Shown here in pieces: positions 42,150-64,000 of a stretch of 64,000 bases of DNA. Where the stretch lies: assembly GCF_947568905.1 (NCBI RefSeq), contig NC_079164.1, positions 9,486,001-9,550,000 on the forward strand. The letters run 5' to 3'. Each line of letters opens with the position of its first letter. Positions within the stretch are counted from its first letter, which is position 1. The DNA is from Ostrea edulis. Taxonomy: Eukaryota. Position numbers and translations under genes: made by a program. The notes beneath the pieces were generated by a model. It saw only the letters and a list, made by a program, of their open reading frames with translations, was not told the DNA's origin and ran no database searches.

Positions 42150-42938
42150 CAGTGGCAGATTTAAGGGGGGGGGGGGGGGTATACGCAATTTTCAAATTTA
42201 AGGTAAAACGTGGTCTCTTGTTTAGAAAAATGTACTAATAGATAAAAGAAGCAATAATTTCTTCCATCCCGGAGAAACGAATGACAAATTCTTTTGATTT
42301 CTTGAGAGAATTAGGTGAATCGATGCCAGAGTATAGAATTAATATTCACTTTAACTAGCGGCCGTCACTTATTATCTGGCGGCCGCCACATAGATTAACT
42401 GGCGGTCGCCACTTAATTCATATGACGGCCACCAATTATTCTACTACCCCTCTCTCTCTCTCTCTCTCTCTCAAAGGGATGTAATCCCTGCAATCTCCCT
42501 CTCCAATACAGCCGACGGTCCCCTCCTCCCCTAAAAATTTCAAATGTTAGGTAAACCGTGTTATCTTGTTTAGACAAATGTACCAAACGATGTAAGAAGC
42601 AATAATTTCTTCCACTCCCGGAGAAATACATGGCAAAATCTTTTGATTTCTTGAATCATTTTATTGGGAGAACTTAATTTTTTCCAAAAACCCTTAAAAT
42701 TTGCGTCATTTTCTTAATTTCACCTTATTAAAAATAATAGAAAATAGTACAAATGACTAAATAGGGGACATATTTCAGGCCCTATAAAATCTAAGAGCTT
42801 CCGGGGGCTTCGCCCCCTGAGCCCCCACCACGGCTTTGCCCTGGTCCCACTGAGGGCCTAAAGGCGTTCACCAGACCCGCTGATTCATAAAGTGCCCCCC
42901 CCCCCGCCCCGTAACCTCAATTCCTGGATAAGCCCCTG
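42150..42938. mobile_element. Composite MITE (CAGTGGC...GCCCCTG), partly duplicated internally
   Basis: Same family as 63484-63931; the internal segment occurs twice (42190-42310 and 42530-42660). Confidence 0.65.
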
Positions 42939-43118
42939 TTAGTAATAGATGTATATGATATACAATTTAGAGCATTATTGTTTTTCGATTGTGCTGTTGA
43001 TATACAACATACGATATCTAATGTCGACAGATTCCCACACGAGCAAATCTTCATTTGTACATGCCTGTAAACTGTATGGTTTTATGCTGATAAACTGAAC
43101 TGGACTTAATATACCGAC

Positions 43119-43456
43119 AGTAGTATAAGGCGTCCCGATAGGGGGTTCAACTGAGTGCACTTTTTATGCAAATGAGGTCAAGTAAGGGTGTTTTTGATTG
43201 GTCAAGCGGTGTCGGGGTCAACGGAGTGCACTAGGACGGGGTCAACCCCAGCAGGGGTTGTAGAGCGGGTGAATAGGCTGGCCTATGGCCGCTGGTCTAT
43301 GATGCGGTACTTTCGCTTTGAGTTCCTGGAATGAGTTCCTGCTATTTTTCTGAAAATCCAGTGAAATCCTGTGTATTAAATCTAAAAGAATAACAGTGTA
43401 TTAAATCTAAAAGAATAACACAAGGTTTTAAGTTGACATGTTTATTAAAGAACAAT
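43119..43456 (+). repeat. Left terminal inverted repeat (338 bp)
   Basis: Reverse complement of 62897-63234 with no mismatch found by eye; extends 7 bp further with one mismatch; contains a 25-bp tandem duplication at 43371-43420. Confidence 0.95.
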
Positions 43457-43556
43457 GGTACAAGCATAGAACAATGCAAAACAATTCAATAAACATAAAA
43501 ACAGTTCAATAAGCATAAAAACAGTTCAATAAGCATAACAGTTCAAGCACAGTCCA

Positions 43557-44474
43557 TTACTTTCTGCTGAGTTTCTTCTTCTTTTTTGGCCGTTCTTCAG
43601 TAGGTGCGGTTGGATTCCACATCTCTAACGGTGTGTATTCTCTCTTCACAGGGGATTTTAAGCCAGGTACGGACCCAATCATCGCATCTATCTCCGCTTG
43701 TTCTTCTGGACACTCACTAATCCAGTGTCCTATTTTTCCGCATTTGAAGCAAGGATCCTTTTGTTTGGTTTTCTTGCTGGTCTGTTGAGAATCTGCTGAC
43801 CTCGATTTCTTACTGGTCTGCGGATAATCTGTTTTCTGTGGGCAATCCGGCGACCAATGTCCTGTTTCTCCACACGTGTAGCACGGGTTAGCAGTGTAAT
43901 CTGGAGTGTATTCCTTCCTAGGTTTTTTAGAAGTCAGCTCTTCCAGCTTCTTCAGTAGGATTGTGGTATGATTTCCAATCTCATTACTCAACACATTAAT
44001 GCGGTTAACGATCCCGTCTAGTGTCGTGGTAATGATGGCGAAATCGGTCCTGCTCATGGGGGAATCTTCTCCACCGAAGGGGGGTTTATCGTATAAGCCC
44101 ATCTCCAGTCCCGTAGCATCCTGTGAATCGGGAAAATAGAAGCCTAATCCGGGGTCTGTCGGATTCTGGCTAGGGAGGTAATCCGAGGTCTGGGCCATCT
44201 TCTCTTGTCGAGCAACGTGGTCTGAAGGCGTGAGATTGAAGCTCGTGGTCTGGTTCGAGGTCTGGGCCATCTTCTTCTCTTCTCTTCTTCTTTGAGGAAG
44301 GTAGTCTGGAGACGTGAGCAAGAAGTTCGAGGTCTTCCCCAGTTCAGTCTTCTGATCGTCAGTCTTAGCTTTCTTCAGTTCAATGTAGTCTTTCTGTGGT
44401 CCCATCTGCTTCTGTACCAGCTGATCTATTTTCTTCTGAGCTTTGTCCACAAATTCTAGTTGTTTCTGAGCCAT
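43557..44474 (-). CDS. Polinton accessory protein with two CCHC zinc knuckles and a C-terminal NLS
   Basis: CYTCGETGHWSPDC and CFKCGKIGHWISEC; ends RPKKKKKLSRK; TATAAAA at 44533-44527; AATAAA within the left TIR. Confidence 0.8.
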   Translation of the reverse strand: MAQKQLEFVDKAQKKIDQLVQKQMGPQKDYIELKKAKTDDQKTELGKTSNFLLTSPDYLPQRRREEKKMAQTSNQTTSFNLTPSDHVARQEKMAQTSDYLPSQNPTDPGLGFYFPDSQDATGLEMGLYDKPPFGGEDSPMSRTDFAIITTTLDGIVNRINVLSNEIGNHTTILLKKLEELTSKKPRKEYTPDYTANPCYTCGETGHWSPDCPQKTDYPQTSKKSRSADSQQTSKKTKQKDPCFKCGKIGHWISECPEEQAEIDAMIGSVPGLKSPVKREYTPLEMWNPTAPTEERPKKKKKLSRK

Positions 44475-44759
44475 GTCTTCTGGAAGGTGATTGAAGATCG
44501 AATGAGGACTGACACTGGGGCTCCGCTTTTATAGCCAGCAAAATGTCTAGACTATTCTGTCTCGTGAGGGGCACGTGGGGAGCACGTGGTTGCATCATCT
44601 TTTTCTGGAAAAACCGGTTTCAGCTAGAACATCGCGCGACCAGCGCGTGCTAGTGCACTAATTGAACTTGAAAAGCCGGTTTCTCGCGACCAGCGCGTGC
44701 TAGTGCACATTGGTACACATTGACTTTAGTGGAATGGAACTTATATTGGTGTTTAAAGT

Positions 44760-44775
44760 AGCCCTAAAAAGGGCT
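44760..44775 (-). terminator. Histone-type 3' stem-loop downstream of the Rep-like ORF
   Basis: Minus strand reads AC-AGCCCT-TTTT-AGGGCT-AC, 19 nt after the stop codon at 44795. Confidence 0.7.
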
Positions 44776-44794
44776 GTGCATGAAGTTTTTATTT

Positions 44795-45301
44795 TTAAAA
44801 ATGGCCGGCTTCATACGCAGGTTCTTCTATATACACGTGTAAGTCATGATCTTCGGATATAATGTGTTGTACTAATTGTCGAGCTCTTCTCCCGGGGAAA
44901 CGTATCTCTTCGACGGTTTCCCACATCCAGTGTGCATCCCAAAACATTACCCATACACTTCTCCGGTAACGTGGTTTCTCCAGTCGAATAAATCCTGATA
45001 CTTTTTGAGTGCCGTTCAATAACGTGTAAAACTGGTAAATCATGTACTGTATGAGGGGGGAATTTTTCAGGTACATGTCACTTAAACGCAGGTAAATATC
45101 CTCCACTGTTTCATGTGACCGCAATACATAGTCAAAACACCAATTTTTAGATCGCCCCCAGCGTAATCGATGGCGACATCTCTGTACTAAATTGTCCCAG
45201 ATCCCCATCTCGTCTACATAATCTTCTACTATGGTTAAATTCTCCACTGGTTGTATTCCCTGGCCGCGGCGTCTCGCTCTTAAAATTCTCCGTGTATCCA
45301 T
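44795..45301 (-). CDS. Degenerate CRESS-virus Rep-like (HUH-fold) protein
   Basis: KNWCFD ... IQYMIYQ ... GTQKVSGFI ... DAHW aligns by eye with nanovirus/circovirus Rep motifs I and II; the catalytic His and Tyr appear absent. Confidence 0.55.
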   Translation of the reverse strand: MDTRRILRARRRGQGIQPVENLTIVEDYVDEMGIWDNLVQRCRHRLRWGRSKNWCFDYVLRSHETVEDIYLRLSDMYLKNSPLIQYMIYQFYTLLNGTQKVSGFIRLEKPRYRRSVWVMFWDAHWMWETVEEIRFPGRRARQLVQHIISEDHDLHVYIEEPAYEAGHF

Positions 45302-45340: not shown

Positions 45341-45416
45341 TGACGTACAGGTGTTTGATCACGTGGTGCAGGTGTTTGATCACGTGATGCATAACCTTTA
45401 CCTATAAATACAGGTG
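45341..45416. promoter_or_regulatory. Divergent promoter with duplicated E-box module
   Basis: CAGGTGTTTGATCACGTG x2 (45348-45365, 45369-45386); TGACGT at 45341; TATAAATA at 45403-45410. Confidence 0.55.
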
Positions 45417-45440
45417 TTTTCTGAACGTTCGTTATTTACT

Positions 45441-45773
45441 ATGGGCGGCAGTGCTACTACGAGAATAAATGGATATAGTTATGTACTACAATGTATGAAC
45501 GTGGCCTTACATAATCCTCACATTCAAAATGCTCGTCAATTTGTACAACAGATGTCACCGGAGGTCAGAAATGTACATAGTTTTCAACGGATTGCTGATT
45601 CATTAGCGGAGAATACCAATACGGGACGTTTACTCATGATTTATTTGTATGCTGAGGAATTGAAACAGAATCTTCCAGACCAGATGAGTGACATTGATCG
45701 GATCTTACGCGATTGTTTACAAAAAGGATTCGTGGAACTGATTCGTATGAAAGGAATGGCTGCCCTGTTATAA
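45441..45773 (+). CDS. Bcl-2-like small helical protein, paralog A
   Basis: FQRIADSLAENTNTGRLLMIYLYAEEL resembles a BH1 region (FxxIAxxL...NWGR); first ATG after the TATA box. Confidence 0.55.
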   Translation: MGGSATTRINGYSYVLQCMNVALHNPHIQNARQFVQQMSPEVRNVHSFQRIADSLAENTNTGRLLMIYLYAEELKQNLPDQMSDIDRILRDCLQKGFVELIRMKGMAALL

Positions 45774-45810
45774 AACAAGAACGTTTTAGAATTTTTTCAT
45801 TTTGATCATC

Positions 45811-46164
45811 ATGGCTGAATTGAACAACAACGTTCTTACCGCTGTATTACAGTATTTCGAGGACTACAAAGAATCGGTGAACAACGCTCGTAGCGCTGCA
45901 TTACAGTGTATCAAGGACTGGAAAGAAAAACAGCCGTTGAGATATAAATTCGCCATGAAGTTGTTGATCTTTTGGGAATTTCCTATGACCTTATATGAAT
46001 ATTCCAGCGTTTGCAAGCATATAGCCGACAACCTGAACAGAGAGTCTGGATTGATCATGATTTATACCATGGACCAAGAATTTAGACGACGGGAACCTGA
46101 GAAGACTGGGGCGATTGTAGCGATTACCGATCACTGGTTGGAAAAGGTGTATAAAAAAACCTAA
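45811..46164 (+). CDS. Paralog B of the small helical (Bcl-2-like) family
   Basis: Shares FPMTLxEY...LIMIY...EF...PE...I..I...WL..VY with paralogs C and D. Confidence 0.6.
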   Translation: MAELNNNVLTAVLQYFEDYKESVNNARSAALQCIKDWKEKQPLRYKFAMKLLIFWEFPMTLYEYSSVCKHIADNLNRESGLIMIYTMDQEFRRREPEKTGAIVAITDHWLEKVYKKT

Positions 46165-46192
46165 CCGTTTTCTTTTCCTTTATTCCTGGAGG

Positions 46193-46540
46193 ATGGCCAG
46201 CAGTGACAACATCGCAGAAAAAGCGCATAACCATGCATTAGAATGGGTCGAGAAAATGCAAGACGATACGGTGTTTCAAGCTGTTAAAAATTATCTGATA
46301 GCGGGGGTGTTTCCAATGACTCTGGACGAATATACAGATCTACGGAACCGGATATACATCAATCTCTATAACGATGCGGGATTGATGTTAATTTATGTTG
46401 TGGGGGAGGAATTCAAGAAACGCATGCCTGAAAAAATCGCCGAGATTGAAAGTATCACCAAGGACTGGCTTCGAGAAGTATACATAAAGTGTGAAGAACT
46501 TAATTCATTTCATTTATTCCCGGAGGATGGCCAGCAGTGA
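46193..46540 (+). CDS. Paralog C of the small helical (Bcl-2-like) family
   Basis: FPMTLDEY...GLMLIYVVGEEFKKRMPEK...WLREVY. Confidence 0.6.
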   Translation: MASSDNIAEKAHNHALEWVEKMQDDTVFQAVKNYLIAGVFPMTLDEYTDLRNRIYINLYNDAGLMLIYVVGEEFKKRMPEKIAEIESITKDWLREVYIKCEELNSFHLFPEDGQQ

Positions 46541-46832
46541 CCACATCACAGAGAAAGCGATAGTTTATGTATTGGATTATCTCACAGACATTCATTCTGG
46601 GCAGATTGAATTTGTGTTACACTATATGCGAGAAGAATTATTTCCCATCAGCTTAAAGGACTATCCATGTCTCTGTCAGTATTTGATCGAGAACCGGATC
46701 ACCCCGCAAGCCTTAGTATTGATTCATTTAATGGGCCGGGAATTGAAACGAATTCGACCCACAGACAGAGCAGAAATCGAGAAAATCAGACTACGATGTC
46801 TTCGAGAGATGTACGTCAAGTTAAACGTGTGA
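46527..46832 (+). CDS. Paralog D of the small helical (Bcl-2-like) family
   Basis: Starts MASSDHITEKA, a DNA-level copy of the paralog C start; FPISLKDY...LIHLMGREL...CLREMY. Confidence 0.6.
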   Translation: MASSDHITEKAIVYVLDYLTDIHSGQIEFVLHYMREELFPISLKDYPCLCQYLIENRITPQALVLIHLMGRELKRIRPTDRAEIEKIRLRCLREMYVKLNV

Positions 46833-47014
46833 CTTTTAATCTGGATCATAATGAAGTGTATCTGTTACCCGAAGAAGACCGGACAAGTATCTGGATGACT
46901 GTAGCCGCTGATCGATATCGATTTCAACGCAGGATTCGAGAAATGGGAAAAATGTTGGACCCTATTTTAAAAAGACATGTGCATTGGTGTTGTGTGTGGG
47001 AGTTATGTATTTGA
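46796..47014 (+). CDS. GADD34/ICP34.5/DP71L-like PP1-targeting protein (72 aa)
   Basis: KRVTF (RVxF) followed by WMTVAADRYRFQRRIREM, matching the PP1/eIF2alpha-binding module; AATAAA at 47028-47033. Confidence 0.8.
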   Translation: MSSRDVRQVKRVTFNLDHNEVYLLPEEDRTSIWMTVAADRYRFQRRIREMGKMLDPILKRHVHWCCVWELCI

Positions 47015-47450
47015 AATATGTGACATGAATAAAATTGTTTACACGAAAGCTGTGTTTGGTTGAGTCTCTCAGAGAAGGGTTTATTTGTTGAGGAATCCAG
47101 AAAATCCTAAAGGTAGAGTGAAAATCGAATCAATTAAGGTGTTTTCTATCGAATAGACCTTATGAGATGTTTTTAGGGATGTACATGGTCGAGAAATAAA
47201 TTTTTAAAGAGGCGGTGAAGAAACATTGAACCTCGACTCGACCTCTTTAACCGCTGTTTCTTTGAAAACTATGCGACGTAGCAAAATAAAAATAAGTTTA
47301 ACGCATTCGCCGTCTCAGAATCTATCAGATTAAATCTACCTTGCACAGATATCGAATGTCTAGAAAAAGACAATGAGAAAAAAACTCTCTACTCGAAAGC
47401 ACAAATCCGCCATTTTGACGGCCACCATCTTGGCTTCGTCTCCGAAGCGA

Positions 47451-47489
47451 GGGATGTTTTCGAGGAGGTCCGCGCTTTCCTGATATATA
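47451..47489 (+). promoter_or_regulatory. Histone H4 site-II/HINFP-like promoter element plus TATA, copy 1
   Basis: GGGATGTTTTCGAGGAGGTCCGCGCT followed by TATATA at 47484-47489; 25/26 identical to 49175-49200. Confidence 0.55.
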
Positions 47490-47571
47490 CCGGCGCACTC
47501 GCCAGTTCGCTTCACTGGTGATCCAGCACAGTTGTAGAAGATTTTTGAAGATTATTTAAGAAGAAAGAAGA

Positions 47572-48360
47572 ATGGCTACAAGAAGAGACCCGCTCTACAA
47601 TTTCCAGACCTTGCCTGGCTTTCGGTACCGGCTGGTAGTGGTGGCTGAGGAACGGGTAGGGGAGAATTGGGTTGTGCGTTCTGAGAACGACCTGAGCACC
47701 TTCTCCCCTTTCGACCAGAGTGGGGTCCGTGAGATCATCTGCCGGGTGCGGGCCGAGTATGAAGGGAGGGCACCCCGCCGCCGCACCGCTCGAATCTCCA
47801 CGGCCACGAGACCGCGCCGACGGGCCCCACAGCCACCCTCACCACCACCACCTTACTCCCCGGCGACGCCTACAACACCACCACCAGCGATCCCATCGGC
47901 ACCAGTGGAATACAGCCCGGTGCCGATGAGCGACTCACCAGCGTCACCGGTGGAGTATTCACCGCGGTCACCGTCCCCCGCACCACCTCCCAGTCCAGCC
48001 CAGAGTCCGTCGCTGTTGGTGGCAGCTACGTCATCACCACCGAGACCAGCAGCCCCTGCAAGACCCCCACCACCTACCATCCGGTTTGCAGGGAGGACTC
48101 CGCCACCGAGACCAACCCACGCACCGGTGGCAACTCATCCCCCGAGGAACCACCCTATGACTGTCCCTGGCTGGGCAGATAGGGCGGTTCCCATCTGGTT
48201 TAAGTGTCCTGTCTGCTGGCAAGACAGGGTACACTCTGGAATTACGTGTAGGGGATGTGGGCAGCGCCCAGCTTGCTGCTCGTGCGTGGAAGAGTTACAG
48301 GAGCGGCGACACACCCGGGGACGGTGCCCGTTATGCCGGTTTACCGGAAGCAGGGAATGA
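47572..48360 (+). CDS. Proline-rich protein with PPxY motif and C-terminal RING-like finger
   Basis: PPPPYSP; CPVC...CRGC...CCSC...CPLCR. Confidence 0.75.
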   Translation: MATRRDPLYNFQTLPGFRYRLVVVAEERVGENWVVRSENDLSTFSPFDQSGVREIICRVRAEYEGRAPRRRTARISTATRPRRRAPQPPSPPPPYSPATPTTPPPAIPSAPVEYSPVPMSDSPASPVEYSPRSPSPAPPPSPAQSPSLLVAATSSPPRPAAPARPPPPTIRFAGRTPPPRPTHAPVATHPPRNHPMTVPGWADRAVPIWFKCPVCWQDRVHSGITCRGCGQRPACCSCVEELQERRHTRGRCPLCRFTGSRE

Positions 48361-48382
48361 AAGTCGGTCCTTAGGACCAAAC

Positions 48383-48403
48383 GGCCCTTTTCAGGGCCAC
48401 CAA
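48383..48403 (+). terminator. Canonical histone mRNA 3' stem-loop
   Basis: CCAAAC-GGCCCT-TTTC-AGGGCC-ACCAA, 22 nt after the RING ORF stop; purine-rich GAAAAGA at 48411. Confidence 0.88.
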
Positions 48404-48510
48404 CTTTTTTGAAAAGACACTTTTTATGGCAAAAATCAAGAAACACACAAGTTTGTTTTAAAAAAGTTTTTATTAACACAAGTAATAGCTAGAATAAAGC
48501 TATAATAAAG

Positions 48511-48699
48511 TTACATTTTCTTGACAATGTAAACATGTTTATGATACTGATAAGCAAAGTCACAAATCCATCGTCTATAATGAGTCCAATTGCCTCCGGC
48601 TAATCCATGAGGTTTCACCGTTAAACAGTTACATTGTTGTACAATAGCATCCACCCAAGGTAGAGATAATACATCTCCTCGTAGATCCGTCACCGACAT
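48511..48699 (-). CDS. Hypothetical 62-aa protein
   Basis: Its ATG overlaps the stop of the upstream Cys-rich ORF; minus-strand AATAAA at 48474-48469. Confidence 0.35.
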   Translation of the reverse strand: MSVTDLRGDVLSLPWVDAIVQQCNCLTVKPHGLAGGNWTHYRRWICDFAYQYHKHVYIVKKM

Positions 48700-49091
48700 G
48701 CTGGTTGACAGGTCTCACAGGTACACGTTAACCGGGGTTCTTGACTGTAAGGACAATGTTGAAACAGCCGGGGATCAAACTTTCTCTGAGTCCAGCGCTC
48801 TCTAAACTCCTGACAGATCTCACAGGTACAGTCCTTATGTGCTATTTCTTCTTCAGGGGTGATGGTACAATGCTGCGGACACTTACACGGTAGCCAGGGT
48901 TCTCTAGTGTGACTACAACATTTATAGACAAAGGGATAATACGTCAGCTCTGCCAATCTCTCTATCCACTTCTGTTTGGCCAGGATGTTTTCTTTTTTAT
49001 AATGAAAACACCCACAAGTGCTCCAAGGTCCTCGGCAATACCCACACACTAGTACATCTTTCTCATCGTCCGCGTACCGTTCAAACGACAT
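48690..49091 (-). CDS. Cys-rich protein with three C-x5-P-x3-C-x-C repeats
   Basis: CGYCRGPWSTCGC, CSHTREPWLPCKC, CPYSQEPRLTCTC; upstream TATA-like, TGAGTCA and TGACGTCA elements. Confidence 0.65.
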   Translation of the reverse strand: MSFERYADDEKDVLVCGYCRGPWSTCGCFHYKKENILAKQKWIERLAELTYYPFVYKCCSHTREPWLPCKCPQHCTITPEEEIAHKDCTCEICQEFRERWTQRKFDPRLFQHCPYSQEPRLTCTCETCQPACR

Positions 49092-49174
49092 GATTGAGAA
49101 AAAATGGTAACAAGTGACCTATGTATATAGTGTTTTTGATGAGTCATCAACATGACGTCAGCCATCTGAGGTAG

Positions 49175-49213
49175 GGGATGTTTTCGAGGACGTCCGCGCT
49201 CTCGCCTTTTTAA
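49175..49213 (+). promoter_or_regulatory. Histone H4 site-II/HINFP-like promoter element, copy 2
   Basis: GGGATGTTTTCGAGGACGTCCGCGCT, containing ACGTCCGCG. Confidence 0.55.
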
Positions 49214-49265
49214 ACGAGCGCAACGTCAAAATCGGGCATTCCGATTTTTTAAAGGAACCAGAACC

Positions 49266-49562
49266 ATGAGCCGTAGAGTAGGACCAGACCCTACAGTGAA
49301 TGATTATTGTATCAAATGGGAGGAGGATTGGGAGCAAGAGATTGCCCCGCCGGCCTCACGGGAGGCTCTTCCCCCACCGCCCATGAGCCAGGATCTGCCC
49401 CCGCCAGAGGAAAACTGGGACGCAGAGTTAGAAGTGGTGCAACGGCCTCCGGGGAGATTGTTTTTTAAACACGGCTGGTTGCCCGTTTTTGTGTTTGACC
49501 ACGAGCAACCCCCGGAGGAGCAGAAAAAGAAGAGAAGAAAGAAGAAGAAGAACAGACAGTGA
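49266..49562 (+). CDS. Hypothetical 98-aa acidic/Pro-rich protein with a basic C-terminal NLS
   Basis: ACCATG start downstream of the repeated promoter; ends KKKRRKKKKNRQ. Confidence 0.6.
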   Translation: MSRRVGPDPTVNDYCIKWEEDWEQEIAPPASREALPPPPMSQDLPPPEENWDAELEVVQRPPGRLFFKHGWLPVFVFDHEQPPEEQKKKRRKKKKNRQ

Positions 49563-49673
49563 GGGGGACCGAGAAGAAAAGAAGAGAAGGAGAAGAGAAG
49601 AAGAGAAGGAGAAGAAGGAGAAGAGAGAAGAGAGAAGAAGAGAAAAGACCAAGAACAGAGAGAGAAAGAAAAC

Positions 49674-49694
49674 AGCCCTTTTCAGGGCTACCCA
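49674..49694 (+). terminator. Histone-type 3' stem-loop with compensatory A-U first pair
   Basis: AAAAC-AGCCCT-TTTC-AGGGCT-ACCCA; GAAAGA at 49703-49708. Confidence 0.85.
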
Positions 49695-49792
49695 TTCTTT
49701 TTGGAAAGACATGGTTGATTACAATGACAAGAAATTTTTTTTTTTCCAACGTTTTATTAAACTCCAACTATGAACAATAACAATAACATAGT

Positions 49793-50297: not shown

Positions 50298-51701
50298 TTA
50301 GTAATCGATGCTGACTTCTCGTTGTTTGTTGATTTCTAGCAGATTGTCGAACACGGCATACACCACACAGTTTAAGGTCCTGGCTACGTTGGCGGCAAAT
50401 TGCACTTCCACTCTCAAGTTCCCCGTCTGTATGAGATGAAATTTATCCGTCTGGGCTTCTTGATCTTTCGTGAAATCCACACACCAGAGGGTGTAACCGT
50501 TTTTATACTCTTCTAGGGTAATGTCCGGAGCCCAGTCCTGACCTAATTTTCCCAAGCCTTTGTACAGACTCAAATACGATCTCAGGTACTGATCGTCGGT
50601 GAAATTAGGTTCCAAAGGTCGGGTTTCCATCATTTCTCCATTGATACTGATTTCTAATTTCTTGACTCTCTCATTTTGGAAATGAAAGGGGTTTCTGGTA
50701 TTATCCCCATTAAAAGCCGCATTGTCCACAAAACCCAACACGATCAGTTTAGGCATCTGTCCTTGAAACAGATGATCGGTGATTTTAGATTGGGTGCCAC
50801 TAGGAATGGTGAAGGTTTTCACTTCCACTCGTCTCAATGGATATTTCGCCGTTTGAGTACTCAGTTGCTGATTGATGAGATTAATGATACTCGGCACAGG
50901 TTTGACTTTCCTCACCCACAAGATCATACTTTGAATGACCACTTTCCCACTACTCCCGGCAGCGGTCATCATGTAGAACTGGGGTCGAGCGCGATTGAAT
51001 CTGAGACGGACATCCAAACCATTAGGGAGACATTTCTCTTGCTCAAACAAATCCAGATGTAATCGATCCATCAACACGATCTCCTTACTGTCTGTAATCT
51101 TCTCGTGACGTTTTCTCAACCCTACATTCTTGGAATCATCCGGATACTCGGGAGTCGGGATGACGGCCGCGATGCTGATTTTGTTATTCAGTACTGGAAA
51201 TTCCACAGGAGTTTGAGCCAGAGCTTCTAATTTGACCTCATCCATATGTCCTGCCGTATCTTTTTCCCACAAGCTACAGGCTCTCATCTGGGTTTCCAGA
51301 GTCTTGGGTGCATAAGACAACAATTTCTCCAGATACGCTTTGTAGGGATAAGTATCCGTCCCCGGGGTAATGACTTTTCCATTGAGACTGACATCGATTT
51401 CACTGAACAAGGAATGGAGAATGTTATTCACGGGGGTGGAGGTCGAATGGCCTCCTGCGAGATTCGTTCCATTGGCTTTCGTGAATTTACAGACCATCTG
51501 GAGATAAGTTTGGGATAAATCCAGATATTCATCTCCTTGTCCTTTGATTTCAAATTCAATCGGAGCCGTATCCGAGTTGAGGGTACTGGAAATGGGGTAA
51601 TATTCCATCCATTTCGAATCTTCTAAAGTGACGTTGGTCGGGGGCACTTTAAACAGTTCTAAACTGCTGGTACCACAAGCGCAAGATTCTCTGTGCATCA
51701 T
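50298..51701 (-). CDS. Double jelly-roll major capsid protein
   Basis: 467 aa; [52 protein letters not shown] are typical Polinton MCP motifs. Confidence 0.92.
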
Positions 51702-54218: not shown

Positions 54219-54498
54219 GGTGAACTGATGAATCTGAAGAAGATCGTTCCTGTTTTATACTCGGGCTCGCTAACGTCATTTGTGGACTAGGCATGACGTA
54301 GCCCACCAAAGAACTTAAGGTCACCATCCAAAAATCGCGATTGGGATCGCCTAAGGCTAACATGACGACCGAAGTGATAATGATGGTTAAACACAGGAAT
54401 AATTGTGCAAAATACACAATTTCTGCTCGAGGGACTTTTTCACCCAAGAAAGTCCACTGGTTGGTCATGGCCGAATGAGATCCGCTTGCGGAATCCAT
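54211..54498 (-). CDS. Small protein with two predicted TM helices
   Basis: IVYFAQLFLCLTIIITSVVMLALG and FWMVTLSSLVGYVMP. Confidence 0.65.
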   Translation of the reverse strand: MDSASGSHSAMTNQWTFLGEKVPRAEIVYFAQLFLCLTIIITSVVMLALGDPNRDFWMVTLSSLVGYVMPSPQMTLASPSIKQERSSSDSSVHHG

Positions 54499-55550
54499 GA
54501 ATCAAAACTGGGAGGATATCCTTTCCAACGCACTTTGACTTCTGAAATGACTTTTTTTCCCACACGCCGCTTTTTATACCCTAAGATTTCTTCCACTTCA
54601 TAGACATCATCGTCTTTAATCACTTGTTGTAATTCCTTCTCGTAAAACGTTCCTTCTAATTCTTCCCCGTGATCATCTTGAATACGATAGACGTTTCGTC
54701 CTGGCACTTTTCTAGAGATGGTAAACAGTTCTTTGGTCCAATTCGGTAAATATCCTTTTTCAAACGTACGTTTGGCTTTACTAATGCGTACACGATCCCC
54801 CACTTGCAAGCGACTCGTGGTATCGGCACTCTGTTTTCCATACAAGGTTTTCCATACGGTCAAGACATTCTTGGCATTGACTTGAGCAGGAGCTCGCCGG
54901 ATACTGCGATGATAGGTATGATTGTAACCATACACCAGATCCCCCAAGACATCGACATACCGTCGTGTTTTATGACGTGTAAAATACCGCCACATGCGTG
55001 CTTTCAGCGTGCGTTGAAAACGTTCCACAATACTGGCTTTGGTTTCGGCATTACGGGTCGTAAAGAAATGAATGGATTTGAAGGCTTGACGAAATTCTTT
55101 ATTGGTAAATTCTTTTCCTTGATCGGACTGAATGCGCACGGGGCGACGTCCCTCTCGAAAAATCCGTCGTAAGCCTCGTATCATTTCTTTCCCCGTTTTC
55201 TGTTTTAAAGGCACGACCCAGGCATATTTAGACAGCACGTCAATGGCACATAATAAAAACGTATACCCATTATTGTCTTGTTTCAAGCTGGAGACATCGG
55301 CTAAATCTAATTGCCATTGTTCATCCATATCCGTCACTCGTGTTTGTCGTCGCTTGAATTTCCTCCGTATCGGTTTATGCAAGGTATAGGTATCTTGAGC
55401 TTTCACCCATTCTCGAATTTGAGACAGGGTAATCTTGTGTCCTAATTGACGCACTTGACGATACAACGCCTGGACTCCCCCATACCCTGTCTTGGGATCG
55501 TAATACAGTCGCTGTAAGATCTGTTCTGCTTTCATGGTAGATTTAACCAT
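54465..55550 (-). CDS. Retroviral-type (RVE/DDE) integrase with C-terminal chromodomain
   Basis: QWQLDLAD, IQSDQGKEF, ASIVERFQRTLK; YEVEEIL...VRWKGYPPSFDSWIP. Confidence 0.95.
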   Translation of the reverse strand: MVKSTMKAEQILQRLYYDPKTGYGGVQALYRQVRQLGHKITLSQIREWVKAQDTYTLHKPIRRKFKRRQTRVTDMDEQWQLDLADVSSLKQDNNGYTFLLCAIDVLSKYAWVVPLKQKTGKEMIRGLRRIFREGRRPVRIQSDQGKEFTNKEFRQAFKSIHFFTTRNAETKASIVERFQRTLKARMWRYFTRHKTRRYVDVLGDLVYGYNHTYHRSIRRAPAQVNAKNVLTVWKTLYGKQSADTTSRLQVGDRVRISKAKRTFEKGYLPNWTKELFTISRKVPGRNVYRIQDDHGEELEGTFYEKELQQVIKDDDVYEVEEILGYKKRRVGKKVISEVKVRWKGYPPSFDSWIPQADLIRP

Positions 55551-58266: not shown

Positions 58267-58794
58267 TTAACAAATAAAAATACGTACAGCTTGCTCAACA
58301 CTATGTCTACAAATAGGACATTGTTTCAGTCCCGTAGCACATATAGCACAAGTACATAAATGACCACAAGGTAAAAAAGCAATTCTCAAGTCTCGTTCTA
58401 AACAAATGTGACATTTCTGGGTACACATTGGATTCCCTGCCGCGTCTAAGGGTAAGCCTTCCCAATCGCAACCACTGTCTTTAGCGCGGGCATAGGCATT
58501 GAAGGCTTGTCGTACCCATTGTTTACCCTTATTACACTTCAGGTAAGGACAGTGAGGATACCAATAAGCATGTTGTATCCAAGGATTGTCGACAGCTCCC
58601 CAATGGTGAAGTCCAAAGTTGCAATAAAAACAGCACGTGTTATCCCCGTACCCTTTGTAAAAGTATCCCGCTTCTGCAATGGTAGGTAATAGGTTCTGCA
58701 AGTGTTCGGGAGCATTTTCAAACGACGTTACTCGATCTGACAGTAGAGCATAACGTGGTGTACCCGGGTTATGTAGTGATTCGTAGTCCGTCAT
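58267..58794 (-). CDS. Inhibitor of apoptosis protein (one BIR plus RING)
   Basis: DRVTSF...AEAGYFY...CCFYC...W...DNPWIQHAYWYPHCPY (BIR); CHICLERDLRIAFLPCGHLCTCAICA...CPICR (RING). Confidence 0.92.
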   Translation of the reverse strand: MTDYESLHNPGTPRYALLSDRVTSFENAPEHLQNLLPTIAEAGYFYKGYGDNTCCFYCNFGLHHWGAVDNPWIQHAYWYPHCPYLKCNKGKQWVRQAFNAYARAKDSGCDWEGLPLDAAGNPMCTQKCHICLERDLRIAFLPCGHLCTCAICATGLKQCPICRHSVEQAVRIFIC

Positions 58795-58829: not shown

Positions 58830-61800
58830 TTAATACCCGTAAGGCAGCGTGTCATAGTTATGAATACGTTGACGTTTATCATACACCATGCGGTATTTCT
58901 TCACCAGAGGAATGGTTCGCACATCATGTTGGCGGGTTCGTTGAATAAAGTGCGGATAGCTGACATGGACTTCTTCTTCTTCTCCTTTTAACATTTTTTC
59001 CAACGTATCGAGAGACACGACTCTAGAGGCACGATAATTGAGTGTCAATCCTTTGACTTTGCAGACAGATTTTTCCCCCTGGGTCTCGTATGCATAATTT
59101 TTGGGCCCGCCCGACATGTACTTGATGATACGATCTCCACCCAATTCATCGGTCCAGCCGCCTAAACTGTTGATAATGGTCGGATTGAACTGGGTCTCGT
59201 CGTGCTGATAGATGATACTATCCGTGTCAAAGTATAAGACACGCTCTCCCAAAGGCTGTAACGTCTCGTACAAATGTAAACGAGCATGAGCTGTTGTAAA
59301 ACACGCCAGCACCACGTTTCCAAAGGGACAGTCTTCTAAAAATTCTTCTTTCTCCTGATAATTGATCAGCATCATATCACATTCGGGGCGTTCACGATTT
59401 TCTAAGAGTTCGATGCCTTTGACTTCTAAAGTGGCATCTTGTAATTTCTGTTGTAATTCTTCTTCTTCCGTGAGATACAGGGATTTGGGTAATTGTAATC
59501 GTTGAGCAAATTTTCCCCACAAACAATTTAAAAAGAGTTTGGCAATGGTTCTTCGGACCGGATTTTTCTGGATGTCTGCCGGATTCATGGCAATGCCTTC
59601 TCGTTGCTGAATTTCCTCAATGTAATGTTGCTGCTGTTGGGCTGTTTGACAATCCTCGGGGAATCCGGAAGCTTCTTGTTTAATTTTCAAAAAGGTGTTG
59701 ATATACGCTCGAAATAAGTGGTCACTGGTTTTCTCAAAATGCCAAACTTCGTAAATGCGGTCGAGACGATAGCCTAGATCTAATGCTTTGTGAAGTTCGG
59801 TGGTCACCCAGGTGCCCGTGAGACTGCGTTCAGAATCGGTGTGCTGGCACCGCTCGTCGGGTCCTAAGTTGCGCTGTTCCGCACAGGTGCGGCATAAGGG
59901 AAAGAGTAATTTACCCCCGGTCTTGTAAGGTAATACGGGGTGATACAGCTCTCGGGGTGGGAGGACACGACAACGAATGAGCCCGAAATAGTCTCTGACA
60001 TCGGTGAAATGGCTGGTGATGACTTGGGGATGTTGGACGGGAAATGGCTTGTATTTCAACACGTACGGGTACAGGGAACAGACATCCACGTATCGCATGT
60101 CACCCTCCTCACAATACAGTCGTGTAGCATTGGTCCGGCCTCCGTACAAAGCGTCACGGGGATTCAAAGGATCTTGTATATCGACTCCTTGTAAAAATTC
60201 CTGTAAGTCGGGATTGGTCTGGGTCTGACGATCAAACTCGTGTTCCCATATGCTCACGACTGTATAGCCTTGGTCTTCTAAAGCACTGGCTCGTTTTAAG
60301 GTGTCCAGGTAGAGGTCTTGATACGTATGCTGAACACGATGAGGATGCATGTCAGTCAACAGATTCGGGAAACAGGTGGGACAGCCGTGCCAGTAACAGC
60401 CATAGAATTCGTACACGATACGAGATTCCTCATCATACCCATCTACTGTATAGGGTCCAAGCGTGACTTCGCCCCCATTTCTAGCATGTCGTATGCAGTG
60501 ATGTTGATGTTCTAGCCAGGCGAACCATCGACAAGCTTTAGCTGAATATCGTCGTGCTGGCCGGTAGCCCATATTGGGAATGATGGCGATGGTATTTTCA
60601 ACCATGAATCCTCGTCGGTAGGCTAAATTAGCCGTGCTGGCAAACGTGATGGATTCTTGAAAGGGGTCTACTTCCACCAGATCAAACAGGGTGGACTTGA
60701 AATGGGCACAACACCGGCGTAAAATATCCACATCCGAGATGCAGTAAGCTAAGAATTCTTTCTGGAAATCAAAGACTTTGCCCTCTTGTTGATGGTACCA
60801 AGTATAGAAGGCTTCACGATTGGCGGTGGACATATCGTCAGGATTGTAGAAATGAGCGGCCGGGTAAGGACCCACATACTGCTGGTTCTCTGTCGTGTTG
60901 AAAAAGTGCGGGAAATATCCTTTTTTCAATTCCGTTAATCCGAAAGCAGAGGGCATCTTGGCAAGAGCAAAGGGTAGAAAGTTGTAAGAATCGATGAATC
61001 TCAACCCCAAGACTTGCATGGATAAGATTTTACTGCCGTTCAGGATGACGGTGGGTTTGATACACGCCGTGTGAACCAGGTAATTCAAAATAAACTGCCC
61101 ATCGTATCCTTTGAAATTGTGGGCAATGATGGTGGCTTCATCGTGTTTGAGTTCCACATGGCCTTGCTCATCGGTCTCGCTCTGTAAGAGCCATTCCATA
61201 AACTGTTTTAACGTGTCGGGTCCTTGAAATAGGAAGCGGCGTTGTGATCCGAATCCTTCACAATGAGAACAGGGCTTGTCGATATCCACACTGTCGCAAT
61301 GTTGACACACACGTTCTGCCACGCATAAATTGGGAATGTGAATACCGTTTTCCTGACTGCATTCGAAATCGTAATAAATGTATATTTTCAACTCCTCTTC
61401 TTCTTCTTTTTCTTTCTTAGGTTTGGGTTTCGTCTGTACAAAGCAGTGATGAGGCATGGTGACGACTTTGTGACAGATGCGGCATTCGGTTTGACCCCCA
61501 CACGCGTGGCGTTTTAATAATTTCTTGGACATCCATTTCTGACACTGGTTACAACGCCCCATTAAACTGCAGACCGTGGTCGTTGTATTACTGCTGTAGG
61601 GTTTTAAATGGTTCTGGTAACAAGCTGCATTTCTGAAAAATCCCTTACAATGAGGGCAATTCGTCTGAGTCCCGTCCGGGGTACAGGGGGTATCGGCTAA
61701 ACAAAATGAGCATCGATGAGGACAGACGGTCCGATGATCTTCAATGTGACTGTAACCAACATCGCAATAATCGCAATAGTATCCGTTTTCCGTCACTCCA

Positions 61801-62792
61801 GGCATAGACACAATGGCATCGTAATGCTCGTTATCCAGCAGGATATTCAAACAAGTCCCGTACCCCGGTCCTTTGTAAATAGGTTCCAGTCGTAAACGAG
61901 TTGTATTCGTTTTGAATTGAAATATTTTCAATCGATACTGTGGGGCGAGCGCGTGCTGTAATTGCTCCCATTCACGTGGCCCACACGGCTGGTTCATAAC
62001 ACACCCAGCTTGTTCCATCAAGGCTATCGCTTCTCGTTTCTGATCGAGAGAATCTTTATCCCCTTTTCTCATGCGTAACCATTTCGTTTCCCATGCCGGG
62101 TCGTTTGATTTCTGGCTGTGTAGACGTGCTACCACAATAGCCCGGGACAAGCAGAGAGAATCCTCAGGATTTTGAATGCGAACGATCGCTCTCTTGGAGG
62201 TTTTGAATTTTTCCTTATCCACGTGTAGATGTTTTTTCTTAGTGCACCCGCTGCCTTGTGGATATTTGACATGGAAAAAATCCATCTGCACTGCCCCGTC
62301 GGTGATTAGGAATTCCTTTTTAGATTGCTGGACGGATTCTATTTTGTTCAGAATTTTGTCCTCGTTGAGCTGATTGGACTGCGTAAATTCGTACCAAATA
62401 GCTGAATCCAGAGACGGGTGCCGAATATTTAAACGTAGATAATCATTGGGATTGCACTGCATTTCCTGTTTCACATTTTTTAACATATCCCGGAAGAGCC
62501 GACGAATGAAGGCTGTATTTTCTTTCTCTGGAATAGGTTTGAAAGCAACATTGTAGACATTTTCCTTGACTTTAAATTTCCGTGATTGACGTCCTCGTTC
62601 CAGTTGAATTTTGTAATAATCCGAAATGAGTTTCTTTTTTCCCCCTCCCCGCTGTAAATACTGTAGTCGTCGTTGATTCTCTCTGCGGAGTTGTAATTCA
62701 CGCTGCCGTTGTCTGTTCAGCTGATCATTCAAAAATCTCAATCGCTGTTCAATATAACTCCGTGGAAGTCCAGTAGGTAACTTGTCTGACAT
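58830..62792 (-). CDS. Protein-primed family B DNA polymerase with N-terminal TP/OTU-like/Zn regions and a Vsr-like insertion
   Basis: ExoI YYDFEC, ExoII AHNFKGYD, YVDVCSLYP, KLFLNCLWGKF, YFDTDS. First ATG at 62792 (the ORF track starts at a TTG, 62813); TATA ~40 nt upstream. Confidence 0.97.
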   Translation of the reverse strand: MSDKLPTGLPRSYIEQRLRFLNDQLNRQRQRELQLRRENQRRLQYLQRGGGKKKLISDYYKIQLERGRQSRKFKVKENVYNVAFKPIPEKENTAFIRRLFRDMLKNVKQEMQCNPNDYLRLNIRHPSLDSAIWYEFTQSNQLNEDKILNKIESVQQSKKEFLITDGAVQMDFFHVKYPQGSGCTKKKHLHVDKEKFKTSKRAIVRIQNPEDSLCLSRAIVVARLHSQKSNDPAWETKWLRMRKGDKDSLDQKREAIALMEQAGCVMNQPCGPREWEQLQHALAPQYRLKIFQFKTNTTRLRLEPIYKGPGYGTCLNILLDNEHYDAIVSMPGVTENGYYCDYCDVGYSHIEDHRTVCPHRCSFCLADTPCTPDGTQTNCPHCKGFFRNAACYQNHLKPYSSNTTTTVCSLMGRCNQCQKWMSKKLLKRHACGGQTECRICHKVVTMPHHCFVQTKPKPKKEKEEEEELKIYIYYDFECSQENGIHIPNLCVAERVCQHCDSVDIDKPCSHCEGFGSQRRFLFQGPDTLKQFMEWLLQSETDEQGHVELKHDEATIIAHNFKGYDGQFILNYLVHTACIKPTVILNGSKILSMQVLGLRFIDSYNFLPFALAKMPSAFGLTELKKGYFPHFFNTTENQQYVGPYPAAHFYNPDDMSTANREAFYTWYHQQEGKVFDFQKEFLAYCISDVDILRRCCAHFKSTLFDLVEVDPFQESITFASTANLAYRRGFMVENTIAIIPNMGYRPARRYSAKACRWFAWLEHQHHCIRHARNGGEVTLGPYTVDGYDEESRIVYEFYGCYWHGCPTCFPNLLTDMHPHRVQHTYQDLYLDTLKRASALEDQGYTVVSIWEHEFDRQTQTNPDLQEFLQGVDIQDPLNPRDALYGGRTNATRLYCEEGDMRYVDVCSLYPYVLKYKPFPVQHPQVITSHFTDVRDYFGLIRCRVLPPRELYHPVLPYKTGGKLLFPLCRTCAEQRNLGPDERCQHTDSERSLTGTWVTTELHKALDLGYRLDRIYEVWHFEKTSDHLFRAYINTFLKIKQEASGFPEDCQTAQQQQHYIEEIQQREGIAMNPADIQKNPVRRTIAKLFLNCLWGKFAQRLQLPKSLYLTEEEELQQKLQDATLEVKGIELLENRERPECDMMLINYQEKEEFLEDCPFGNVVLACFTTAHARLHLYETLQPLGERVLYFDTDSIIYQHDETQFNPTIINSLGGWTDELGGDRIIKYMSGGPKNYAYETQGEKSVCKVKGLTLNYRASRVVSLDTLEKMLKGEEEEVHVSYPHFIQRTRQHDVRTIPLVKKYRMVYDKRQRIHNYDTLPYGY

Positions 62793-62896
62793 GATGTCGA
62801 AAGTGACACCCAATGCACCGCGCGCCGCTTTATATATATTACCTGTAGACAGCGCTGGGTAAAACTAGGGACCGTGCCAGCTCTGGGGATTGTACT

Positions 62897-63234
62897 ATTG
62901 TTCTTTAATAAACATGTCAACTTAAAACCTTGTGTTATTCTTTTAGATTTAATACACTGTTATTCTTTTAGATTTAATACACAGGATTTCACTGGATTTT
63001 CAGAAAAATAGCAGGAACTCATTCCAGGAACTCAAAGCGAAAGTACCGCATCATAGACCAGCGGCCATAGGCCAGCCTATTCACCCGCTCTACAACCCCT
63101 GCTGGGGTTGACCCCGTCCTAGTGCACTCCGTTGACCCCGACACCGCTTGACCAATCAAAAACACCCTTACTTGACCTCATTTGCATAAAAAGTGCACTC
63201 AGTTGAACCCCCTATCGGGACGCCTTATACTACT
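62897..63234 (-). repeat. Right terminal inverted repeat (338 bp)
   Basis: Reverse complement of 43119-43456. Confidence 0.95.
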
Positions 63235-63483
63235 ACCGACGTATCAAGCACGTGGAACCAGGATGCTGATCCTTCACTTTTTTGACAACGTTCATTTTCA
63301 AAAATTATTATTTTCATACACAAACTAAGTTAATTTCACATGTGAAATAAGATTAATTGGCGGATTGGCCCCCATATCCCATTCTCTTTGGTGATAGTAA
63401 TGAATGGTAAAAATGTAATAATGAATGAACTGATGGATTGAAGAACAAACGAAGCCCCCTCGCTCCAATTTATAGGAGTAAGA

Positions 63484-63931
63484 CAGTGGCGGATTTAATG
63501 GGGGGGGGGGGCGCAATCGCCCCCCCCCCTAAAAATTTCAAAGTTACATGTAAAGTATAAATCGGGGTATCTTGTTCAGAAAAATGTACTAAACGTTAAA
63601 AGAAGCAATAATTTCTCCCACTCCCGGAGAAATAAATGACAAAATCTTTTGATTTCTTGCATTACTTTATAAGGAGAACTTAATTTTGTTCCAGAAACCC
63701 TTAAAATTTGCGTCATTTTATTAATTTCACCTTATTAGAAATGATAGAAAATAGTACAAATGACTAAATAGGAGACATATTTCAAGCCTTATAAAATAAA
63801 ATCTCGGAGCTTCCGGGGGCTTCGCCCCCTGACCTCCCACCACGGCTTTGCCCTAGACCCACTGGGGCCCCAGACCCCACTGCCTCATAAAGTGGCATCC
63901 CCCGTAACCGCAATTCCTGGATCCGCCCCTG
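63484..63931. mobile_element. MITE with CAG...CTG ends and 5-bp TSD (hAT5-like)
   Basis: CAGTGGCGGAT ... ATCCGCCCCTG flanked by TAAGA on both sides. Confidence 0.75.
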
Positions 63932-64000
63932 TAAGAAGTTTGGGCAATTTTACTTCAAGAGAAAATTTTAAATTCCTTTTTTCTGCTTGTCAACAATATT

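Follow-up and report, generated by a model that had tools for sequence, protein, structure and literature searches.

Why would two unrelated genes of a mobile element carry the same promoter box and end in the same kind of stem-loop as histone genes? This question is raised by a window of 64,000 nt from the flat oyster Ostrea edulis, a mollusc (contig NC_079164.1, positions 9,486,001 to 9,550,000; "the window" refers throughout to this whole stretch of DNA, and all coordinates below are counted within it), which contains a Polinton/Maverick element at 43119-63234. On the plus strand of this element, two intronless genes that we call gene 1 (47572-48360, 262 aa) and gene 2 (49266-49562, 98 aa) are each preceded by a nearly identical box of 29 nt and followed by a histone-like stem-loop. 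Our preferred explanation, which we put forward tentatively and at somewhat less than an even chance, is that the box serves both genes as a proximal promoter element, which HINFP may bind, and that together with 3' ends cleaved by SLBP and the U7 small nuclear ribonucleoprotein (snRNP) it would give the two genes a histone-like expression linked to S phase. The element may thus borrow the machinery with which the cell expresses its histones in S phase.

A near-identical box precedes genes 1 and 2

The original prediction described two near-identical 26-mers, each followed by a TATA-like run, and both parts of this description were borne out. The 26-mers lie on the plus strand at 47451-47476 and 49175-49200 and agree at 25 of 26 positions, with a single G/C difference, and the identity stretches to 29 nt (27/29) when copy 1 is taken as 47451-47479 and copy 2 as 49175-49203. 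Copy 1 is followed after 7 nt by TATATA (47484-47489, plus strand) and copy 2 after 6 nt by TTTTTAAA (49207-49214, plus strand), which includes TTTAAA at 49209-49214, giving a gap of 6-8 nt between box and TATA-like run in both cassettes. Copy 2 lies within a divergent promoter that gene 2 has in common with a Cys-rich gene of 133 aa on the minus strand (48690-49091). Allowing up to three mismatches, no third copy of the box was found in the 64-kb window, and 100 shuffles likewise gave none. Partial copies in front of other genes were also considered and rejected, as no box word of at least 10 nt recurs in the window. The longest box words that recur in the element are 9-mers, one just inside the second ORF (open reading frame) of a series of tandem paralogues (45855/45856) and the others, at 48983 and 62588, inside ORFs; host sequence contains a few more.

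Same-strand pairs of 26-mers with at most one mismatch were found at three loci of the 20,116-bp element, while 0/300 dinucleotide shuffles contained any. The other two loci are a 50-bp tandem repeat (units at 44632/44682) and the starts of two paralogous genes (46179/46513), and such recent internal duplications lend some credit to the idea that the box is a functionless remnant of duplication or gene conversion within the element. However, the sequences flanking the two boxes cannot be aligned: their local alignment was no better than that of shuffles (140/2000 upstream and 1592/2000 downstream), a result which also led us to reject a longer duplicated promoter. As the flanks are unalike and the 29 nt are near-identical, the box forms an island of identity and is not part of a longer recent duplication. 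Furthermore, both copies have the same orientation, are equally far from a TATA-like run and precede genes with the same rare 3' end, and we therefore consider a mere remnant very improbable. Taken together, the island of identity and the conserved spacing to the TATA-like run fit a constrained cis element.

A cis element of this kind could in principle act on the DNA itself, as a site for a replication, packaging or integration protein, and not on transcription. Nothing specific favours this explanation beyond the fact that the repeat is internal and conserved. The box is absent from the terminal inverted repeats (TIRs) of the element, where such sites would be expected, and both copies are strictly promoter-proximal, which makes a role of this type extremely improbable.

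The palindromes TGATGAGTCATCA and TGACGTCA (49138-49160) stand just ahead of box copy 2, in the divergent promoter between gene 2 and the Cys-rich gene of 133 aa.

Genes 1 and 2 end in histone-type stem-loops

A 3' end of the histone type is regarded in metazoans as a hallmark of mRNAs from replication-dependent histone genes, and the downstream element that follows the cleavage site is purine-rich (PMC6314538, PMC5011920). In a histone gene, this element is also complementary to the 5' end of U7 snRNA. Stem-loop 1 of the oyster element (48378-48423, plus strand, with the hairpin at 48383-48398) has its hairpin 22 nt past the gene 1 stop codon, folds as the expected histone hairpin and scores 40.2 bits with the Rfam model RF00032, whose gathering score is 34 bits. 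A purine-rich GAAAAGA follows 12 nt after the stem (48411-48417). Stem-loop 2 (49669-49714, plus strand, hairpin at 49674-49689) scores 30.8 bits (E 2.6e-5), so that only gene 1 has a 3' end at or above the gathering score; it opens with an A-U pair and is followed after 13 nt by GGAAAGA (49703-49709). Downstream of the stem, the two share a T-run plus GRAAAGACA. Since BLASTP finds no relationship between the products of the two genes (E 1.6), these observations agree with the claim, made in the original prediction, of unrelated ORFs that end in histone stem-loops.

Neither gene has a poly(A) signal (AATAAA or ATTAAA) between its stop codon and its stem-loop. This, the absence of introns and the short untranslated regions (UTRs), with leader lengths deduced from the positions of the TATA-like runs, is what is seen in a replication-dependent histone cassette. 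The 3'UTR of gene 2 up to its stem-loop measures 111 nt and is 95% purine. Poly(A) signals are found further downstream, at 48493/48504 for gene 1 and 49756 for gene 2, that is 67-105 nt past the stem-loops. The accessory genes that lie upstream on the plus strand, four Bcl-2-like paralogues in tandem and a PP1-binding ORF of the GADD34 type, have no box and end at an AATAAA at 47028.

A third stem-loop of this type lies on the minus strand (44734-44780), after a gene of 168 aa that we call gene 3 (44795-45301, minus strand). It scores 22.3 bits with RF00032 (E 0.039) and is identical to stem-loop 2 at 19 of 20 positions; neither the ACC(C/A)A tail nor the purine-rich element is present, and the stem-loop is immediately preceded by an AATAAA. 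No shared box was detected upstream of gene 3 within three mismatches. Hence, both genes with a box have a stem-loop (2/2) and two of the three genes with a stem-loop have a box (2/3), indicating that promoter and 3' end are separable modules.

Two further features were noted around these signals. The 22 nt that separate the gene 1 stop codon from stem-loop 1 (48361-48382, plus strand) are taken up by another small hairpin, GGTCC TTA GGACC. Shortly upstream of box copy 1, CCGCCATTTT, put forward as a YY1-like site in the original prediction, is located at 47407-47416; a decayed fourth stem-loop overlapping it (47404-47435, 72% like stem-loop 1) was considered and rejected, as this segment does not fold as a histone hairpin and has no Rfam match at E<=5.

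Both copies of the box match the HINFP consensus perfectly

HINFP is a zinc-finger activator of histone H4 promoters; it is reported to bind site II of histone promoters, to which it brings NPAT and RNA polymerase II. The Mizf/HINFP family is reported to be widespread in metazoans (PMC2837044). An HINFP-like core in the box had been predicted, and comparison with the JASPAR consensus [A/G][C/G]GTCCGC (RSGTCCGC, as quoted in bioRxiv 10.1101/2024.09.18.613605) substantiated it, since both copies contain a perfect match: AGGTCCGC at 47466-47473 in copy 1 and ACGTCCGC at 49190-49197 in copy 2, both on the plus strand. The lone G/C difference between the 26-mers falls on the degenerate S position of this consensus. 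The TATA-like runs begin 9-11 nt past the octamers, and an HINFP consensus near and upstream of TATA is a feature of H4 promoters. As the host is an oyster, however, it cannot be taken for granted that the box is the same as site II of vertebrate H4 genes, and the TTTTC-N5 spacing proposed in the original prediction is a putative likeness.

These two octamers are the only matches to RSGTCCGC inside the element, and the window as a whole has 4, compared with 1.47 expected. We estimated the chance that a given 26-mer holds an HINFP octamer on either strand at ~4e-4, a value that stays meaningful when one considers that a few histone-related factors would have been equally acceptable. Octamers with one mismatch are more frequent, with 23 in the element; these were discarded as further candidate sites, as none is comparably placed before a TATA-like run, and the promoter of gene 3 has only ACGTCAGC. 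A route to S-phase control through E2F was likewise rejected, because its consensus TTTSSCGS (bioRxiv 10.1101/2024.09.18.613605) is absent from both promoters.

The box could also be a real shared promoter element that is read by another factor, of the host or of the element, in which case the match to HINFP would be a coincidence and the stem-loops would be independent of it. The conserved block, at 26-29 nt, far exceeds the 8 nt of the HINFP core, and HINFP does not explain why the two copies agree throughout their left 16 nt. Moreover, several proteins of the element are Cys-rich or have zinc fingers, and gene 3 ends in a stem-loop and has no box. On the other hand, a different factor would leave it to chance that the 26-mers differ solely at the degenerate HINFP position, that the octamer is found nowhere else in the element, and that it accompanies histone-type 3' ends on both genes, as a histone-like programme predicts. 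Overall, we regard another factor as a possibility to be taken seriously, albeit a doubtful one.

Genes 1 and 2 do not encode histones

The product of gene 1 has an N-terminal domain, a Pro-rich middle with a conserved P-rich/YSP motif and a C-terminal Cys-rich finger that resembles a RING finger, with weak similarity to RING and ZZ domains (E 0.006 to 4). Its AlphaFold model is poor (pLDDT 43). The protein corresponds exactly to an NCBI entry and belongs to a cluster at 90% identity with 54 members; the 14 members listed besides the query's own entry are all from O. edulis and lie on several chromosomes. More distant homologues were found down to 42-45% identity (P0027, P0028). The product of gene 2 has an acidic Trp-rich N-terminus, a Pro-rich middle and a basic C-terminus, and a single homologue was found for it, at 75% identity. 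Pfam searches gave no match for gene 1 (E<=1) or gene 2 (E<=0.01) and detected no histone fold in either, NCBIfam, a library for prokaryotic annotation, returned nothing for the two genes, and there is no histone gene within the window. Genes 1 and 2 therefore mimic histone genes in their regulatory layout and do not belong to the histone gene family.

An NCBI gene model from another copy in O. edulis (P0026, an XP entry), which corresponds to ~47572-49562 of the window, fuses the whole of gene 2 to the N-terminal portion of gene 1, with a short stretch in between that is antisense to the 133-aa gene.

A related proposal concerns origin and is compatible with either functional reading of the box, namely that the cassettes derive from a host histone H4 gene that was captured by the element and had its coding region replaced. 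The combination of promoter core, short UTRs, absence of introns, stem-loop and downstream element does reproduce the full layout of a histone gene. However, the two cassettes are alike in short functional motifs only, and neither ORF retains a match to Pfam or a detectable histone fold. As the promoters are unalike beyond the 29 nt and no histone fold was matched, we found no positive evidence for the captured H4 cassette that had been suggested for this locus, and we consider this origin improbable.

A putative histone-like expression programme

According to the reading that we favour, in which the box is a promoter element of a histone-like programme, the host HINFP orthologue might bind the box upstream of the TATA-like run and transcription would start ~25-30 nt after that run, giving short leaders. 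The transcripts would not be polyadenylated, and SLBP and the U7 snRNP would cut them after the stem-loop, with the purine-rich downstream element as the guide. As a result, the gene 1 and gene 2 proteins would be expressed in a histone-like, S-phase-coupled manner. This reading is supported by the repeat statistics of the box, by an octamer that is unique to the two boxes within the element, and by the upstream accessory genes, which have no box and use AATAAA. Additional support comes from the stem-loops, the first over the Rfam threshold and the second close to it, and from the conservation of gene 1 as a protein at identities as low as 42-45%.

Several observations weigh against such a programme. 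Stem-loop 2 is under the Rfam gathering score, and a third stem-loop gene, gene 3, has no box. The poly(A) signals 67-105 nt past both stem-loops make polyadenylated read-through forms possible, and if RNA evidence backs the gene model P0026, some transcripts run past stem-loop 1 and have it spliced out. The HINFP matrix is that of the human protein and may not equal the specificity of the oyster orthologue. To our knowledge, HINFP has not been linked to H4 promoters in molluscs; the literature that we searched contains no description of such regulation, which also sets this locus apart from the known setting of histone genes. Besides, the match to HINFP was spotted post hoc, and an 8-mer within a 26-mer could fit some factor by chance. 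Finally, all of the evidence comes from the sequence of one copy of one element.

In its broadest form, the proposal would be that a capsid-encoding Polinton of the oyster took over the whole histone expression programme, with an HINFP/NPAT-type promoter core and non-polyadenylated ends made by SLBP and U7, confining non-histone accessory proteins to S phase; we find this rather unlikely. The claim in the original prediction that the two genes are complete histone-gene mimics thus holds in part: the proximal-promoter position of the box, the HINFP consensus and the stem-loop with its purine-rich element fit it, whereas the stem-loop of gene 3, which comes without a box, does not.

Comparison with known genes and elements

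Like replication-dependent histone genes, which combine an HINFP/NPAT promoter with an SLBP/U7 3' end, genes 1 and 2 are intronless, have short UTRs and a TATA box, and carry the HINFP octamer just upstream of it. They differ from histone genes in that their products are not histones and that they are located on a mobile virus-like element and not in a histone cluster; in addition, stem-loop 2 starts with an A-U pair, has a sub-threshold Rfam score and follows a purine 3'UTR of 111 nt. A further parallel may be found in histone genes with dual 3' processing, such as H2A.X (PMC7807067), which have a stem-loop followed by poly(A) signals. The signals at 48493/48504 and 49756 would similarly allow both forms. 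Unlike H2A.X, the oyster genes are not histone variants, and the use of either 3' end is a prediction.

The element itself resembles Polintons/Mavericks and the proposed adintoviruses (PMC8502044) in its pPolB, rve integrase, A32/FtsK-type ATPase, adenain-like protease, double-jelly-roll capsid protein, TIRs and 6-bp target-site duplication (TSD), and it resembles adintoviruses also in having a block of accessory genes with IAP-like and Bcl-2-like members (IAP, inhibitor of apoptosis protein). The adintovirus paper covers the Bcl-2 and IAP homologues and does not mention promoters, polyadenylation or stem-loops. Our searches of the literature found no work linking histone stem-loops to Polinton, Maverick or adintovirus, and those on SLBP with non-histone genes, viruses or transposons, together with a 2026 survey of histone genes in >250 species, returned nothing relevant. 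What appears to be new is therefore the putative histone-type regulatory cassette on non-histone genes of a mobile element.

If the proposed regulation is correct, the transcripts of genes 1 and 2 would be the first mRNAs of a mobile or virus-like element with a histone stem-loop at their end, and would join a very small number of non-histone mRNAs that have one. It would also follow that the histone expression pathway can be borrowed, as shown by non-histone genes on a multi-copy element, and we would gain a first tangible clue as to how elements of the Polinton/adintovirus type set the timing of accessory gene expression. The 54 members of the gene 1 cluster, with only O. edulis names, on several chromosomes, among those listed, provide many natural replicates in which the maintenance of box and stem-loop can be followed.

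Other accessory genes of the element

For gene 3, a single homologue cluster was found, at 84% identity, and residues 83-125 of its product have a weak Pfam match to Viral_Rep (E 0.015) that may be due to chance. In its divergent promoter, an 18-nt direct repeat containing CACGTG occurs twice within 45350-45392, beside a run of the TATAAATA type. The 50-bp tandem repeat (44632-44731) lies between stem-loop 3 and an ORF with a CCHC zinc knuckle (43557-44474, minus strand), and may act as a promoter or enhancer for this zinc-knuckle gene.

Upstream of gene 1, four tandem paralogous ORFs of ~115 aa that are Bcl-2-like occupy 45414-46832 on the plus strand, the first of them with a weak match to the Bcl-2 family (E 0.008); paralogues 3 and 4 share 89% identity over 56 nt at their starts. 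Also on the plus strand, an ORF of 115 aa (46667-47014) matches the Pfam family PP1c_bdg, the PP1-binding region of GADD34/ICP34.5 type, with an E value of 1.1e-5 and a score of 25.7 bits, just below the cut-off of 26.1. From its sequence, this ORF is a candidate adaptor for the dephosphorylation of eIF2alpha. On the minus strand, a gene of the IAP type with BIR plus RING (58267-58794) adjoins the polymerase gene.

The element and its host context

The element is a complete and intact Polinton/Maverick of 20,116 bp that is multi-copy in O. edulis. Its termini read AG...CT, its TIRs (43119-43463 on the left, 62890-63234 on the right) have arms of ~345 nt that are 98% complementary, the repeat search having paired arms of 359 nt, and it is bounded by the 6-bp TSD ACCGAC, read directly from the sequence at 43113-43118 and 63235-63240. 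The hallmark genes are all on the minus strand and comprise pPolB, an A32-type ATPase, an integrase of the retroviral type with rve and chromodomain, an adenain-like protease and the capsid protein; the BIR plus RING gene is on this strand as well. The polymerase (protein-primed, family B; 58830-62813) matches the Pfam family DNA_pol_B_2 with an E value of 2.3e-57, the integrase (54465-55550) matches rve with 1.6e-11, and the packaging ATPase matches Pox_A32 with 5.4e-7; for the protease, the match to Peptidase_C5 (E 2.9e-4, 21.0 bits) is slightly below the cut-off of 21.3. Thus, polymerase and integrase, capsid, ATPase and protease, and long TIRs with a 6-bp TSD, the features that define membership in Polinton/Maverick, are all present. 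Those hallmark genes that were examined are single uninterrupted ORFs in which no breaks were counted.

The capsid protein (467 aa, 50298-51701, minus strand) was recognised from its predicted structure, which has a pLDDT of 87.8. While PDB sequence searches with the capsid candidates gave no match, a Foldseek comparison of the model retrieved the major capsid proteins of Sputnik, PBCV-1, iridovirus and mavirus with E values down to 1.4e-16, identifying the modelled product as a double-jelly-roll major capsid protein. Its family is very large: a protein library clustered at 50% identity contains 9,042 representatives related to it at E<=1e-3. No Pfam model matches it.

Mavericks make up 0.28% of the O. 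edulis genome, according to the genome paper (PMC9679248). The observed/expected CpG ratio is 0.91 in the element compared with 0.60 in the host flank at 1-43112, and G+C is also higher in the element; together with the 98% identity of the TIRs, this contrast fits a young insertion. The host flanks at 42150-42942 and 63484-63935 contain direct repeats that are 83-93% identical and ~21,006 nt apart, and another copy lies at a distance of 348 nt, suggesting that the element lies within or beside a host repeat family. Elsewhere in the host sequence, two matches to a tRNA model at 6735-6806 and 6970-7046 (plus strand, 235 nt apart, 41.8 and 37.2 bits) represent either tRNA genes or tRNA-derived repeats.

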